The notes: generated from the letters alone by a model not told the origin. 64,000 nucleotides of DNA from Chara braunii (GCA_003427395.1 BFEA01000001.1:9393741-9457740), one strand, 5' to 3'; shown: positions 31,644 to 54,054, counted from the first letter of the stretch. Program-made: numbers and translations.

Positions 31644-32193
31644 GGGAACGGAAAAAGGGCAAGGGGGAAGTAGGGGGAAGGGGTTTGGGGGTTGCGGGGT
31701 GAAATCACACCACGTGGCGGATTTGTGTTTCTAATAAACTAAAGTTGAAACATTAAAGTAATGGTATTTTGTTTTTTGTTTTTTCATTTCTTTCTTTTTT
31801 TAAAAACATTTTTAATGTGGTCAGTAAGAAGGATCCCTATTTGCAGATCCTGCCAGTTGATGGCTCCTTTCTATACGTGCGGAGCTGCACCTGTTGGAAA
31901 CCGGGTCCAGCGTCCCAGAATCAATAAGTTCAGAAAGAGCAACAGTGCTAATCTGATCCGAGTGGTTGCTGCCGGAAGCTTCGGGAGCAGAGTGGGGGGG
32001 TACACGTAAAGCTATCAGACTTTAGACTTGAGTAGGGCAGAGAGAGGAAGGAGGGAGATATGTTGAGAAGAGCAAGCTATAAGAGCGGACATTTGGAGGG
32101 AGGGTATTTGGGGAGGGAAGGTGCGATATTGGGCCATGTGGCAGCTACATATTTTGCTATTTTTTCTTCTTGTTTTCGTTCTTTTTTATTCTT

Positions 32194-32251
<58 letters not shown>

Positions 32252-32418
32252 TTATCTGTCCATGCGTGACTGCTGCGACACATCACACAGCCACAGTCAC
32301 ACAGGTGCAGCACGTGAGACACACACAGACAGTGCCCCCCCCCCAACACAATGGTGTGTGTGTTGTAGCCTCGCCATTTTGCTGCAGCGGCAGAACGAAT
32401 TAGGTGGAGCACACACAC

Positions 32419-32490
<72 letters not shown>

Positions 32491-33635
32491 CACACTTAGG
32501 TGCTGCACATGACACGGTGAGATAGGCACAAACAATTCCTCCCCCACACACACACACACGGACACAAGCTGAGTCATTCTGTTGCAGCAGCAGAACGACT
32601 TGGCTGCAGCACAGTCAGATGTGTGTGTGTGTCTGCATCACACAACCATAATCACAGTTAGGTGCAACACATAACATGGTGACACAGGGATGAACAGATG
32701 TGTCAGTGCCATTGTACTTGTGTCATTGTTACTTGTAGTAGTAGTAGTACTGTAACTACTTCTGGAACTGTTATAGTAGTAGTATAATTACTACAACCAG
32801 TTCCGCTTCTACTACCACTATTACTACTTTCGGTACAAGTAGGAGTAATGTTGTTGCTGCTACTACTCCTTTTTCTACTGCTTCTATTACTACTACTACT
32901 ACTACTACTATTACTACTACTACTACGACTACTACTAGTACTAGTCGTACTAACACTATGTAATGGTCTGCTTATGTGTGTTTATGTTTGTGTGTGTATG
33001 TGGAAGTCACCACCCAAGGAGGCAGTTGCCGAATACAACTTTAAGAGGAGCGACTCATTATGCAGTGTGCAAGTTTGGTGTCACGCTGCTGCTGAAACAA
33101 GTGTTTGGTGTGCCCAGCGATGGTGAGGAAGAAGGCGGTCTGACCCCTCCAGGGGAAGACTCCGGGGTTGTAGGAGGAGGAAAGTGATGGGGGTACTTAC
33201 CTGCCTATGGTGGACGACATCTTCATCTTCTTCGTGGATGCTGCACCTAGAAGGCCCCATACGGGGTGTACATCAACNAAGACTTTGGGGCAGAGATAGG
33301 NATGGCGGCATGAGTAGGGGGAGCATATCAGCTTCGCGTTGTCCTTTGAACACCGAAGCTNGNCTNCANTAGTCCGCCATACCCACCTACTAGGAGAAGG
33401 AAGGAGGTGTAGTATGTGGCCATGATGGACCTCTAGAGTTGCTGGTAGTAAGATTCAGACATTGATTCTGGTTCATTCTTTCAATGTTATTATTATTATT
33501 GTTAAGAAGAAGTTGGGGGAGTTCAAGGTGGTTGGAGATGGTGGTGAGTGGGAAAGGGATTTGGCATAGGTATTTGCAAGTGTACATCTTCTTCTCTTTC
33601 ATTCTTATTTCTTCTTCTTCCTTTGTCTATTTCTT

Positions 33636-50360: not shown

Positions 50361-50770
50361 TCCGGCTCTTCAACTGTTTTATGTTGAGCGGCCATCCAAG
50401 AAGTGGCAACAGCATTGATTCCTTGAAAACGGGCCTAGAGAGAGAACGGAAGAAGGGGGAGGAAAAAGGATCGCTCCTAGGGAGTGCCACCACATGGTGT
50501 GACAGCCTAGGGACTTGCAACAAGCGTCTAGGTACAATGTAATGGCTTGAACAAGATTAGGTGTACCCTAGGGAAAACAGCCAAACAGTTAAGGACAAGG
50601 GGAGAGAGAATGGAAGAACGCGAGATAATGGGGACTAAAAATAGGGGGGGACAAATGTCGAAGTCTCCTAGACTAATTTTCATGACTTTCATCAGTCTAC
50701 GGGCACTACGAGGTCAGATGCGAAGGCAAAAACAGTTGGGGATGGAGTGAGCTGGGAAAAAAAGACAAAG

Positions 50771-51435
50771 CTATCCAGAGGCCTAGCTCAGTTGGTTAGG
50801 CACGCAAGTGGCATTCAGGAGGTTGTGGGTTCGAGCCCCACAACCGCCTGTGGCGCTCTTAGTGCCAACCAGCGGTGATAGTCGGCTTGATACCTCTGAT
50901 CGGTATCAGCGGGGTCCCTGGCGAACACAGGTGTGAGCATGAGTGTGATTGGGTTGTGTGTGGTGTGTGGGAGAGTGTTGGCCTTAGACACTCCTGATAT
51001 TCGGTTGGGGGTGGGGGATGATGAAAAGGGAGGTGCAGCTACTGACAAAATGCTCGGCCTTTGATTTAGCCGGACTCCGACCGGCGGCCCCACCCCATTC
51101 TTGACCACCGTGGTTGGGGCGGGGGGCAACATGCATCCCCTCTGATGGCTGGAGAGAGACAACAAAGCTATGTTTGCAGGGGTCCCCTGTATAAGCCTTA
51201 GGAGTAGCGGTAGGTAGGTAGTGAAGGTTTTTTTTTTTTTTTTTAAACCGGGCCCGGTGCCCAAGGCTTGATATTACCAATAATCAGATTGAGGCCGGGG
51301 TCCTCACAATCTACCCGAAGTGATCAAACCGAAAACTGCTGAGGTAGGTAGTGAAGGTGAATTGAAAGAATTTGAAAGATGATGAAAGATTTGAGAGAAG
51401 AAAAAAGATACAAAAAAAAAAGAAAAAAGACAAAG
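50771..51435 (+). mobile_element. tRNA-derived SINE (~530 bp without the nested insert)
   Basis: A-box TAGCTCAGTTGG and B-box GGTTCGAGCC at 50785-50838; A-rich tail; TSD AAAAAAGACAAAG on both sides. Confidence 0.85.
51228..51341 (-). mobile_element. Short LINE 3'-tail insertion inside the SINE
   Basis: Poly-T at 51228-51244; TSD AGGTAGGTAGTGAAGG at 51212-51227 and 51342-51357; similar to the 3' UTR at 8680-8745. Confidence 0.85.
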
Positions 51436-51477
51436 GGGAAGGGCATGCTCGGCGCCCGCCACCTAGAGATAGACCAC

Positions 51478-51937
51478 TGGATCCCCCGATTGGCATTTAG
51501 CAGAGTCTGCTGATGTTCATAGGGGAGGGGACCTGAGGGGAGGCANGATCCCCCGATTGGCATTTAGCAGAGTCTGCTGATGTTCATAGGGGAGGGGACC
51601 TGAGGGGAGGCACAGGGATTGGTCCTGTTGGCATGGTCCCTGATGCTTCCCCCGATTGGCACTTAGCAGAGTCTGCTGATGTTCATAGGGGAGGGGACCT
51701 GAGGGGAGGCACAGGGATTGGTCCTGTTGGCATGGTCCCTGATGCTACCGGCCCCCTAGCCGGTATCGCCCACCTGCAGGTCGGGAGCAGCCCCCGCATG
51801 TTCTCTCGTGAACACGGTTCTGGCTGCTACGGGGTTCCCCGTATGCCTACAATTAGGAGTAGTGGTAGGTAGGTAGTGTGAGGTGAAATTGAGAGAAGAA
51901 TATAGCTTTAAAAAAAAAAAAAGAAAAAAAAAAAAAA
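51478..51937 (+). mobile_element. SINE-related 3' fragment with three ~66-100-bp internal tandem repeats
   Basis: CCCCCGATTGGCA.TTAGCAGAGTCTGCTGATGTTCATAGGGGAGGGGACCTGAGGGGAGGCA x3; tail TTAGGAGTAG.GGTAGGTAGGTAGTG shared with the 50771 SINE; poly(A). Confidence 0.7.
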
Positions 51938-54054
51938 GAGAGAGACTACCATCTAATTTTCAAAGACTGGACAAACACAGCGAGAGATTGGGGTTTTTCA
52001 GAATAAGGGACAGGACACTGAGCCCGGGGCCTTCAGGGGAATTTGCTGGGTTAACAATCCTCACGGAACGACCAAAATCATACAGGGGGCTGCGGACACC
52101 TGGGAGTTCTTCCAAGTACATCAGTCGCTAGCTTCTAGGTGGAGGCTGAGTTGGATGCTAAGTAGGAGCCCTGTGATGGGTAGGGATAATTCGCAGCTCC
52201 AAGGGACAGGGTGCTCCACTATAGCCTCACTACTGGCCCGTATTGCTTTATTGAAGGGACGCTGGACCCGGTTTCCAGCAGGGTTCATTTTGGCTGGTTC
52301 AGAGAGGAAGGGAGACAGAAGGGGTAAGCAGGGAGAGTCGGTAGCTGTGCATTTTCTCCCTGCCTAACCTCACTCACTATAGGCTTACTAGCTCGCATTC
52401 ATTTTACATTCCAANCGCATGTCTGTTAACAAAACAATTNCAATGTACAGGGACGCTGGACCCGCTTTCCAGCAGGTGCTGCTCCCCACCAATAGATGGA
52501 GCCTCCCCGGCAATACTAGCGGTGCCTGCTCTTATCAGCACCCCTAGTATCTGCCTGGGCTGATTCTTTAAAAAAAAAAAAAAAAAAAAAAAGAACCCTC
52601 GTTCCCACTACGCCCTCCCTCGGACTTTCTAGACCCGTTCCCACCTCATGCCCTTTCCCTGGCAGAGATTCTGTCCTAAATAATAAAATACTTAGCCGAG
52701 TCTCTTTTACACCCACATGCATCTGAATACACATACACATACATAATTTATATGCTCACATGTGGAACTCCTCCCTGGAGCCCCCTGGGGAGAACTCCAC
52801 TAACATACATGTCTTTTTACATATCTGTTTCCTTTTTGCTGCTCAGTTAGCCCCCCTTTCTTTCGATTGGGGTAGTCAATGCTGGCAGTCTGAGTACTCT
52901 GAGCAATTTGTGTCTTTCATGTGTAATGGGACGCTGGACCCGGTTTCCAGCAGGTGCAGCTCCCCACCAATAGATGGAGCAGCTGGAGGCTATTACTAGC
53001 GGGGGATGCTTGTATCACCCCCTCTAGTAGACAGCTAAGGATTTTCAAAAAAAAAAAAAAAAAAAAAAAAGTGAATTATCTAAAAGAAAATGAAGGAAGA
53101 TAAAGGGAAGCTTGTACATACTTTACCATCATGGAAGCCAGGAAGTGGAAGTTTTTTTTTTGTCAGTTTAATGGACCACTCTCCATCTATTCGTGGGGAG
53201 CAACACCTTGAATAGGTAATCACCCACTCAAGCCCAACTGAAACTCTCAAACTCACCCACTCAAAACTCAATTGAGACTCTCAAACTCACCCACCTATTC
53301 AACACGATGAAGAGCTGTTGAATAGGTAATCACCCACTCAAACGCTACCAACACAGCCATATCCAAGGAAAGACCAGATCTCTCTACCAGGCCTCACACC
53401 CCTAATCCGGCTGGGTTACAGAGTTGGGCCAAATTGCTCCGTCTTTGTCTGTTTTGGTGCCTTTGTTATTTCTGATCCTATGGGTTATTTGGGGGCCCTG
53501 GAAGATGGTCTATGGGAGTCTTTTGATTCTGCTTTTTCTATTTCTGCTCTGCAATCTTTCTGAAGTCTCTTGGCCTTTCTGGTTCTATTGGCTATTTGGG
53601 TTTTTTTGTCTAGAGTTTCCGGCTTCTCTGGTTATATGGGCTATTTGGGGGCCCTGGAGGATGGTCCCCCTCACGGCTGTCTTGTTCTCTCTGGCTGGCC
53701 GACTGTTAGGCCTTCCCTGGGCCTTGATCGGGGGTCTTTTCCGCTGCTGATCATTAGCCGGTAGGGTGTCTCTAATTTTCGAGGTCCTGTCCCTTTCTAA
53801 GTCTGTTCGCTTCCTGACTATTTGCTACGTTAGGTGTTTTAGTTTTGGCTTTGATCTCTTGACCAACGGCTTATCTGGGCCTGTGATGAAGGCTCTTGGC
53901 TTTGATCTCCTGACCAACGGCTTATCTGGGCCTGTGATGAAGGCTCGTCGTTTCTAGAACTCTCCGGGGGGGGGTTTCTACGATCGTCCGATGTCTCTGT
54001 GTCAGGTCTGTGTTATATATTGAGAGCGCGCGTTCGTTTCTTCATCGTGACATA

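Follow-up and report, generated by a model that had tools for sequence, protein, structure and literature searches.

L1-type long interspersed nuclear elements (LINEs) are the textbook case of relaxed template choice, in which poly(A) alone suffices. Why, then, should a 53-nt sequence recur almost unchanged just upstream of poly(A) in LINE-derived copies of the streptophyte alga Chara braunii? The question is raised by a stretch of 64,000 nucleotides (GCA_003427395.1, BFEA01000001.1:9393741-9457740; hereafter the window, with positions counted from its first nucleotide), for which an original prediction, made from the sequence alone, had listed 14 copies of a tandem double-pseudoknot motif in retroposon 3' ends and had proposed a selected cis-acting RNA module shared by divergent LINE families. 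The answer that we consider probable, by analogy with elements in which such recognition has been described, is that the module is a 3' tail of the stringent type, recognized by the protein of the second open reading frame (ORF2p) to start reverse transcription.

Read in the sense direction, with the orientation set by the downstream poly(A), the module is GGG-AC-GCTGGA-CCC-NNTT-TCCAGC-A-GGTG-NN-GCTCC-C-CACC-AATAGAT-GGAGC. Its first half would fold into a hairpin (hairpin 1, GCUGGA/UCCAGC) whose loop CCC could pair with GGG 2 nt upstream of the hairpin (pseudoknot 1), and its second half into a hairpin (hairpin 2, GCUCC/GGAGC) whose loop CACC would pair with GGUG 2 nt upstream (pseudoknot 2), leaving an A-rich third loop, AAUAGAU. 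Across the whole window, a 19-mer from the first half finds 14 matches with at most three mismatches, compared with 0.17 expected by chance, and the second half finds 8 matches, compared with 0.03 expected. A covariance model built from the 14 predicted copies recovers 14/14 and adds a decayed first-half copy absent from the earlier list (56510-56548, -; 19.4 bits, E 8e-4); together, pattern matches and model locate every listed copy where it had been placed. One 19-mer match, at 15858, is not a copy of the motif and belongs to an unrelated GC-rich repeat (15770-15880), whose repeated GGACCC-like units give weak chance matches to the first half.

Full consensus copies lie at 40933-40985 (-; 85.4 bits), 45072-45124 (+; 84.2 bits, poly(A) starting 125 nt past GGGAC), 45937-45989 (-; 88 bits, poly(A) starting 122 nt past GGGAC; the reference for read mapping), 52450-52502 (+; 85.7 bits) and 52928-52980 (+; 84.7 bits, poly(A) starting 119 nt past GGGAC). 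The other full copies depart from the consensus as follows: 46171-46223 (+; 79.1 bits) has AGTG/CATT, giving A-U and G-U pairs; 40678-40731 (+; 78.7 bits) has GCTGGG/CCCAGC and CGTG/CACG, both compensated, with CTT and poly(A) directly after; 39829-39881 (-; 77.1 bits) has GCTGAG/CCCAGC, one compensated pair and one mismatch; 31863-31916 (-; 67.7 bits) has one extra nucleotide in the pseudoknot-2 loop and mismatches in hairpin 1 (TCCAAC) and pseudoknot 2 (GGTG/CACG); and 35599-35667 (+; 67.1 bits) has a C-rich insertion of ~16 nt in the pseudoknot-2 loop and no poly(A) within 190 nt. Besides the decayed copy, three copies consist of the first half alone, at 39623-39650 (+; 35.8 bits; GCTGGG/CCCAGC, then ACGTT and poly(A)), 50229-50252 (+; GCCGGA/TCCGGC, with an A-rich tail after it) and 52256-52283 (+; 36.9 bits; with unrelated sequence between it and the next copy), and one of the second half alone, at 53180-53208 (-; 29.5 bits; GGTG/CACG mismatch, GGAGA, then a short tail and poly(A)), which looks like a 5' truncation inside the motif. 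The covariant variants quoted in the original prediction were found as written, namely GCTGGG/CCCAGC at 39628 and 40683 and GCCGGA/TCCGGC at 50234 in hairpin 1, and CGTG/CACG at 40683 and AGTG/CATT at 46176 in pseudoknot 2, as were the two copies with a single pseudoknot-2 mismatch (31893 and 53207).

In most of the window copies a poly(A) or A-rich run begins within ~30-130 nt, in agreement with the original description; where the module stands 3' of an ORF2, poly(A) begins 0-130 nt downstream of it. Most copies are followed by a third module, a hairpin with a freely changing stem and the fixed apex GCTCTTAYCA, then by a few bases and poly(A). Such hairpins occupy 52503-52569 (+), 45868-45936 (-), 40880-40932 (-) and 52981-53046 (+); the first of these, with apex GCTCTTATCA, stands downstream of copy 52450 and is followed by poly(A) at 52570-52593. 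The apex with its closing pairs (CUGCUCUUAUCAG) may resemble the segment CUGUUCUUAUCAG of U2 small nuclear RNA (snRNA). An assembly gap (40770-40879) separates two convergent copies and leaves every motif intact. On its left side it is entered by the poly(A) of the (+) copy at 40678; on its right side it borders directly on the third-module hairpin belonging to the (-) copy at 40985, so that the 3' end of the latter copy, its poly(A), is all that is hidden. An open reading frame (ORF) called across this gap (40330-41016) is an artefact of the Ns.

Most of the window copies have no upstream ORF, and many of them may be truncated LINEs. The first-half copy at 50229 lies, as had been claimed, in the 3' untranslated region (UTR) of a recognizable L1-type LINE, beginning 224 nt after a degenerate, frameshifted L1-like ORF2 remnant (46785-50005, +) with RVT_1 and zf-RVT domains. 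The C-terminal part of this remnant is 68% identical to a C. braunii protein, and nearly all other relatives are C. braunii proteins as well, which, together with the plant-type U6 in the window, marks the DNA as that of C. braunii. We added to the window 11 Chara loci found via ORF2 proteins, one of them a BFBZ contig and 10 belonging to the main assembly, together with three BFBZ contigs from a DNA pattern scan (loci L001 to L064; their ORF2 proteins carry P numbers), and the covariance model gave 44 hits in 305 kb of Chara DNA. The BFBZ01 contigs L026, L034, L041 and L064 (GCA_003427375.1) are part of a metagenome collection and carry Chara-type LINEs with the motif; they are probably Chara DNA and not that of another organism, because their assembly accession adjoins that of the Chara assembly. 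The metagenome scan with a degenerate first-half pattern returned 53 stretches and no evidence of the motif beyond Chara; apart from L026, L034 and L041, the stretches (50 of the 53) are GC-rich and without a second half, and we take them to be chance matches.

Mapping of the ORF2 families that carry the motif places the module 3' of ORF2 in the window LINE, in a related LINE in L001 with the same arrangement (first half only, 11587-11610), and in L057 (P0046), L061 (P0050), L002 and L041. To judge from their protein sequences the carriers are L1-like, because P0052, a complete relative, has Exo_endo_phos, RVT_1 and zf-RVT domains and is colinear with human LINE-1 ORF2p, its best solved relative (E 3e-43, against 1e-9 for R2); a Pfam search of ten ORFs adjoining motif copies found no families. 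The contrast between the module and the proteins is steep: P0046 and P0050 are 25% identical over 706 residues and their motifs are 91% identical, and all pairs of LINE-attached copies are 83-96% identical in the motif. Even within one family, the pair of copies in L002 is 72% identical over 198 nt of upstream UTR compared with ~89% in the motif, where the differences fall mainly in linker and loop positions, with one mismatch in hairpin 1.

Not all Chara LINEs carry this module, hereafter the type-A tail. A type-B tail, CCGGG-(7-8 nt)-GAGG-(3-4 nt)-CCCGG-CCTC, whose segments are interleaved like those of an H-type pseudoknot, is found in a different ORF2 clade (window 8690-8760 (-), L056:11840-11900, L058:13360-13400 and L060:14090-14125). 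A type-C tail is found in two sister LINEs (L059:8640-8730 and L063:13330-13410) and consists of the overlapping helices TTGCTT/AAGCAA and CCGG/CCGG followed by a diverged second half with compensatory changes. In a tree built from the C-terminal ORF2 regions of these Chara LINEs, one starred clade unites the carriers of first-half-only type A (P0001 and the window LINE) with P0046, which has the full type A, and with P0048 and P0051, which have type C; the other clade contains the type-B families together with P0050, a type-A carrier on a long branch whose placement is unsure. The tail type thus appears in large part to go with the lineage of the protein, a pattern that co-evolution of the two would produce. 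Tandem partial duplications within one tail, in which a first-half copy stands 58-190 nt upstream of a full copy, were observed at L061:18801-19440, L034:7385-7475, L060:22332-22448 and window 52256-52502.

Does the module fold as proposed? The pairs of the originally predicted model, including both pseudoknots, were counted in an alignment of 44 copies and compared with 500 shuffles; the copies are kin by descent, so that this control overstates significance and the shuffle counts are not probabilities. For the whole model 95.4% of the cells pair, five pairs show double-sided changes, and none of the 500 shuffles reaches the observed covariation score, while slid versions of the model pair at 26-51% only. 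As a predicted helix, hairpin 1 (6 bp) is well supported: three of its six pairs are compensated (11 sequences have G-C in place of A-U, 3 have C-G in place of U-A and 1 has U-A in place of C-G), amounting to ~3-5 independent compensatory events. Sequencing data from C. braunii were consulted as well: window positions 45868-46110 served as the reference for contigs from two DNA runs, both on one sample, and for the raw reads from two oligo-dT RNA runs. The changes A14>G and U22>C, which are the two sides of one hairpin-1 pair, match in frequency within each of the four runs (for example, 1.2/1.2% in DNA run X1, 12.2/12.7% in RNA run X17 and 15.7/15.6% in RNA run X18).

In the second half, one pair of hairpin 2 (5 bp) is compensated, and the outer pair of pseudoknot 2 varies (GC 25, AU 2, CG 2, GU 1, non-pair 2), the other three pairs hardly at all; taken alone, pseudoknot 2 has a covariation score that 0/500 shuffles reach, and the changes amount to 2 or 3 independent events plus the type-C tail. 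With loops of 2, 1 and 7 nt the H-type geometry is sterically possible, and both helices show covariation, so that this pseudoknot (GGUG/CACC) is predicted with moderate, not decisive, support. Its best single support would be the type-C tail, provided the tails are homologous: the second half there reads ACTG-CT-GCCCC-C-CAG-AATAGAT-GGGGC, in which, relative to type A, hairpin 2 has changed from U-A to C-G and the pseudoknot, shorter by one pair on either side, shows a change from G-C to C-G. In pseudoknot 1 the GGG is invariant and the CCC shows C-to-U changes or decay only (4 G-U pairs, and 4 non-pairs in decayed copies); because of this invariance it carries no covariation information, and all 500 shuffles equal the observed value. 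Of the tandem H-type pseudoknots originally predicted, therefore, the geometry and the covariation of hairpin 1 and of GGTG/CACC stand, and covariation in GGG/CCC is missing. A nested lowest-energy fold, in which the first half pairs with the start of the second, was rejected: it shows no double-sided change, 248-249 of 500 shuffles equal it, and it is incompatible with lineages that bear the first half alone. The covariation and the 25%-identical ORF2s together support the central claim of the original prediction, that of a selected cis-acting RNA module common to deeply divergent LINE families.

For such a module, placed in the 3' UTR of L1-like LINEs (apurinic/apyrimidinic endonuclease (APE), reverse transcriptase and zf-RVT) just upstream of poly(A), we propose the following role. 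ORF2p would recognize the folded module on its own transcript, the adjacent poly(A) would then be placed at the nicked target, and target-primed reverse transcription would start. Every new copy, however 5'-truncated, would inherit the module, which would stay the same in LINE lineages even as their proteins and the remainder of the 3' UTR drift apart. Since there are lineages with the first half only, this half would be the shared core, to which the second half and the third hairpin would be add-on modules. A stringent tail of this kind would account for the invariance of the module in every copy, its modularity, the lineage-specific tail types and its abundance. The wider statement, that a single small, portable tandem-pseudoknot RNA is what every one of these deeply divergent L1-clade LINEs in a streptophyte alga needs for reverse transcription, is made tentatively and falls somewhat short of being probable.

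Several observations weigh against this proposal. On the structural side, two copies carry an uncompensated G.G in pseudoknot 2, the support for that pseudoknot comes from one pair plus the type-C tail, and the modelled case for the first pseudoknot, GGG/CCC, consists of complementarity and feasible loop lengths. On the side of the elements, other ORF2 lineages bear different tails (types B and C), no tRNA-derived head or head of a short interspersed nuclear element (SINE) was found near any copy, nor any SINE partner with an RNA-gene head, and the placement of P0050 means that the shared module could have spread in part by exchange of tails between families instead of by long vertical conservation. 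Finally, processed U6 and U2 copies occur with poly(A) and, for U6, with a 13-nt target-site duplication (TSD), but without the LINE tail; some Chara LINE machinery thus appears to accept, or switch to, other templates.

The exchange of tails also underlies the alternative that survives best, which we nevertheless hold to be unlikely, namely that the tail is a mobile cassette: through template switching or recombination, families would repeatedly take over 3' ends from one another, and the near-identity of the module would be recent, the module being still functional. Type A is present in both major ORF2 clades and close relatives have type B or C; tails are modular (first half, two halves, three modules) and partially duplicated in tandem in L061, L034 and L060; and an identity of 85-96% in the motif is high, given that the proteins of these lineages share 25%. 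Against this, within the starred clade the tail types follow the ORF2 tree, which fits vertical descent with divergence, and the placement of P0050 is unsure owing to its long branch. Moreover, capture still needs selection for the module, and would thus modify the stringent-tail proposal rather than replace it.

An improbable alternative is that the tandem pseudoknots act in RNA stability or translation, protecting the 3' end or recruiting host factors, as pseudoknot domains do in plant-virus 3' UTRs. The position in the 3' UTR and the tandem arrangement would suit such a role, and so would the abundance of the RNA: motif-bearing reads number ~4,000 and ~8,700 in sampled fractions (6% and 12%) of the two poly(A)+ runs, and in ~80% of them the first mate is on the strand opposite the motif, which would mean sense RNA in the case of a stranded library (no library type is recorded). 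The reads run through the motif and upstream past GGGAC, and the loose read ends include a few consensus sequences (agreement 0.85-0.99), indicating that particular loci dominate. However, a role in stability or translation alone fails to account for two things, namely that no part of the retroposed copies is better conserved across families than the module and that tail types are lineage-specific, and the module has no similarity to the viral 3' elements of Rfam.

Much less probable still is identity by descent only, in which the copies would belong to one young family or to a short SINE-like retroposon starting at GGGAC. Such a reading draws on the near-identity of many copies over 53 nt, on their common boundary at GGGAC and on the scarcity of upstream ORFs in the window. 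This boundary is sharp in the DNA runs: the motif is covered by ~18,000 and ~16,000 contig pieces, and a few bases from GGGAC their depth has dropped by a factor of more than 100, with a gradual decay into the third hairpin on the other side. Within the motif only four positions vary by at least 5% in DNA, namely both N of the first loop and both N of the second linker, which are exactly those that the folding model leaves unconstrained, and a rough reading of the contig counts puts the genome-wide copy number at the order of ten thousand. Beyond GGGAC, however, the copies are not one family. Loose contig ends have no consensus (agreement ~0.4), and the 200-nt upstream flanks, described in the original prediction as mostly unalignable, do score like shuffled sequence (null mean 10.3; all but two pairs at or below 16, the two higher pairs scoring 32 and 21). 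An all-against-all BLAST of the upstream flanks returned mostly noise from nested copies and A-runs, with same-family pairs in L002 and L034/L060. The carrier ORF2s are only 25% identical, the stems of the downstream hairpins differ among copies, and compensatory changes are present within the module.

The ends of individual insertions point the same way. An exact-TSD search within the window found nothing, but a search allowing one mismatch across the loci recovered a perfect 14-nt TSD at L062:4279, around ~100 nt of element sequence upstream of the motif, a TSD-bounded copy with ~230 nt of element upstream of the motif at L060:22390, a TSD-bounded truncated LINE of 3.0 kb at L057:13238, and a TSD-bounded type-C copy of 3.6 kb in L063 whose start coincides with the start of ORF2 homology. 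TSD-bounded type-A copies thus hold 100 nt to 3 kb upstream of GGGAC and the RNA continues upstream, which rules out a short retroposon with GGGAC as its start; the copies are insertions of the ordinary L1 type, 5'-truncated and from many lineages. In some copies a conserved block (...GTCAATCCCC..CAGGGTAATCAATGCTGGCAGG...) was observed 35-90 nt upstream of the motif (window 46030-46075, ahead of the (-) copy at 45989; L062:4200-4245; L041; and the L061:30806 region); it has its own smaller contig pile in the read mapping and may represent a further module, the fourth, in one LINE lineage.

Least credible is a self-cleaving ribozyme or exonuclease-resistant structure that defines RNA ends, an option in the original prediction for which we find no support: a double pseudoknot with a sharp 5' boundary at GGGAC recalls ribozymes like that of hepatitis delta virus (HDV), but the motif matches nothing in Rfam at E up to 10 apart from chance microRNA-like matches on the other strand, its pseudoknots are tandem and not nested, it stands at the 3' and not the 5' end of LINEs, and in the two RNA runs there is no pile of molecule starts or ends, thousands of reads crossing both borders.

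Returning to the stringent-tail proposal, it has precedent in the green lineage. L1-clade LINEs of green plants and algae have been reported to possess a conserved structured 3' end in common with SINEs, for example maize LINE1-1_ZM with ZmSINE2/3 and Chlamydomonas L1-1_CR with SINEX-3_CR, and stringent recognition has been proposed as ancestral (PMC3472496). The tail of monocot L1 elements is a single hairpin within the last ~45-50 nt, with a variable stem, the loop UCU and a 3' CGAG (PMC3472496). The Chara elements are similar in being poly(A)-ending L1-clade LINEs with a 3' end that is structured, far less divergent than its surroundings and marked by compensatory changes, and Chara, as a streptophyte alga, fits the proposal of ancestral recognition in green plants. 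By its description the monocot hairpin differs from the Chara module, which is a 53-nt tandem with fixed stems and other loops upstream of a separate variable-stem hairpin, and no SINE partner was found in the Chara loci examined. The third hairpin of the Chara tails has a variable stem and an apex, GCUCUUAYCA, that contains UCU; no CGAG was seen there.

Outside the L1 clade, the avian element R2Tg has a small pseudoknotted element in its 3' UTR that is bound by the protein and is necessary and sufficient for target-primed reverse transcription (PMC12222951). This element is, by analogy, the best mechanistic counterpart of the Chara module, whose A-rich loop AAUAGAU could form triples similar to those of R2Tg. 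R2 is site-specific and uses a restriction-like endonuclease, whereas the Chara proteins are APE-type and L1-like. To our knowledge, there is no sequence similarity between the R2Tg element and the Chara module. In the L2 clade, the tails of eel UnaL2 and zebrafish ZfL2 are conserved 3' stem-loops shared with SINEs, and zebrafish L2 ORF2 binds its cognate stem-loop, reading the stem generally and the loop specifically (PMC4176376); unlike the Chara tails they are a single hairpin with short repeats, without poly(A) or pseudoknot and in another clade. HDV-like ribozymes of the retrotransposons R2 and L1Tc are double pseudoknots associated with elements lacking long terminal repeats (PMC3185411), but are nested, stand at the 5' end and self-cleave, in contrast to the Chara module, which is tandem and 3'-terminal, has no Rfam hit and leaves no cleavage signature.

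Is the module new? At the gathering score, Rfam recognizes only U6 (plant type) in the whole window, and the 53-nt module is not in Rfam; Dfam and Repbase were outside the search and may hold a deposited consensus. The letters of the motif have no match in a search of 8.4 million full texts, and literature searches on Chara transposons did not find the module either. Thus, the concept of a stringent tail is known and the 53-nt tandem-pseudoknot form appears undescribed. The claim of novelty in the original prediction accordingly appears to hold for the form, and its premise that L1 elements need only poly(A) was overstated, because structured L1 tails had already been reported in green plants and algae (PMC3472496).

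So far, work on how and when relaxed L1 template choice arose from specific recognition has had only a few conserved hairpins to draw on, in maize, sorghum and Chlamydomonas. The case in Chara is much stronger, with ~ten thousand copies of a modular tail that is near-invariant across 25%-identical proteins and with sister tails in sister ORF2 lineages, so that the pairing of tail type with ORF2 lineage becomes directly testable. If the dependence of all these LINEs on one such RNA is real, L1-type ORF2 proteins would originally have been sequence- and structure-specific, as are those of R2 and L2, Chara would provide a compact model system for how L1 lost template specificity, and the module might serve as a minimal tag by which an APE-type reverse transcriptase is steered to an RNA of choice. 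Annotation, too, can make use of the module, which flags LINE fragments at their 3' ends in a genome very rich in repeats.

Retro-copies of snRNAs were found alongside the LINE tails. The window contains a processed U6 retropseudogene (37437-37536, +; 93 bits), which is 3'-truncated, followed by an A-run and flanked by the 13-nt direct repeat GAAGA[C/G]TGCAGTC; its presence hints that a Chara LINE is relaxed in its choice of template or switches templates. A polyadenylated U2 copy (L060:14483-14592 (+)) and two U6 copies (L061:29798-29906 (-) and L062:9660-9771 (-)) were seen in the added loci. These three copies lie within ~50-75 nt of motif copies but are not joined to them, and snRNA retro-copies seem to be frequent in LINE-rich Chara DNA.

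Lastly, the window holds elements of other classes. A Penelope-like element on the minus strand (42196-45188) has its GIY-YIG domain (~44585-44831) N-terminal to its reverse transcriptase homology (42196-43428). Such a domain order is the permuted 'Chlamys' arrangement that has been reported from the green lineage (PMC8557442). The LINE tail at 45072-45218 overlaps the start of the long ORF of the Penelope-like element. Elsewhere in the window, a pol remnant of the Ty3/gypsy type with RT_RNaseH and Integrase_H2C2 domains occupies 23253-25485 (-).

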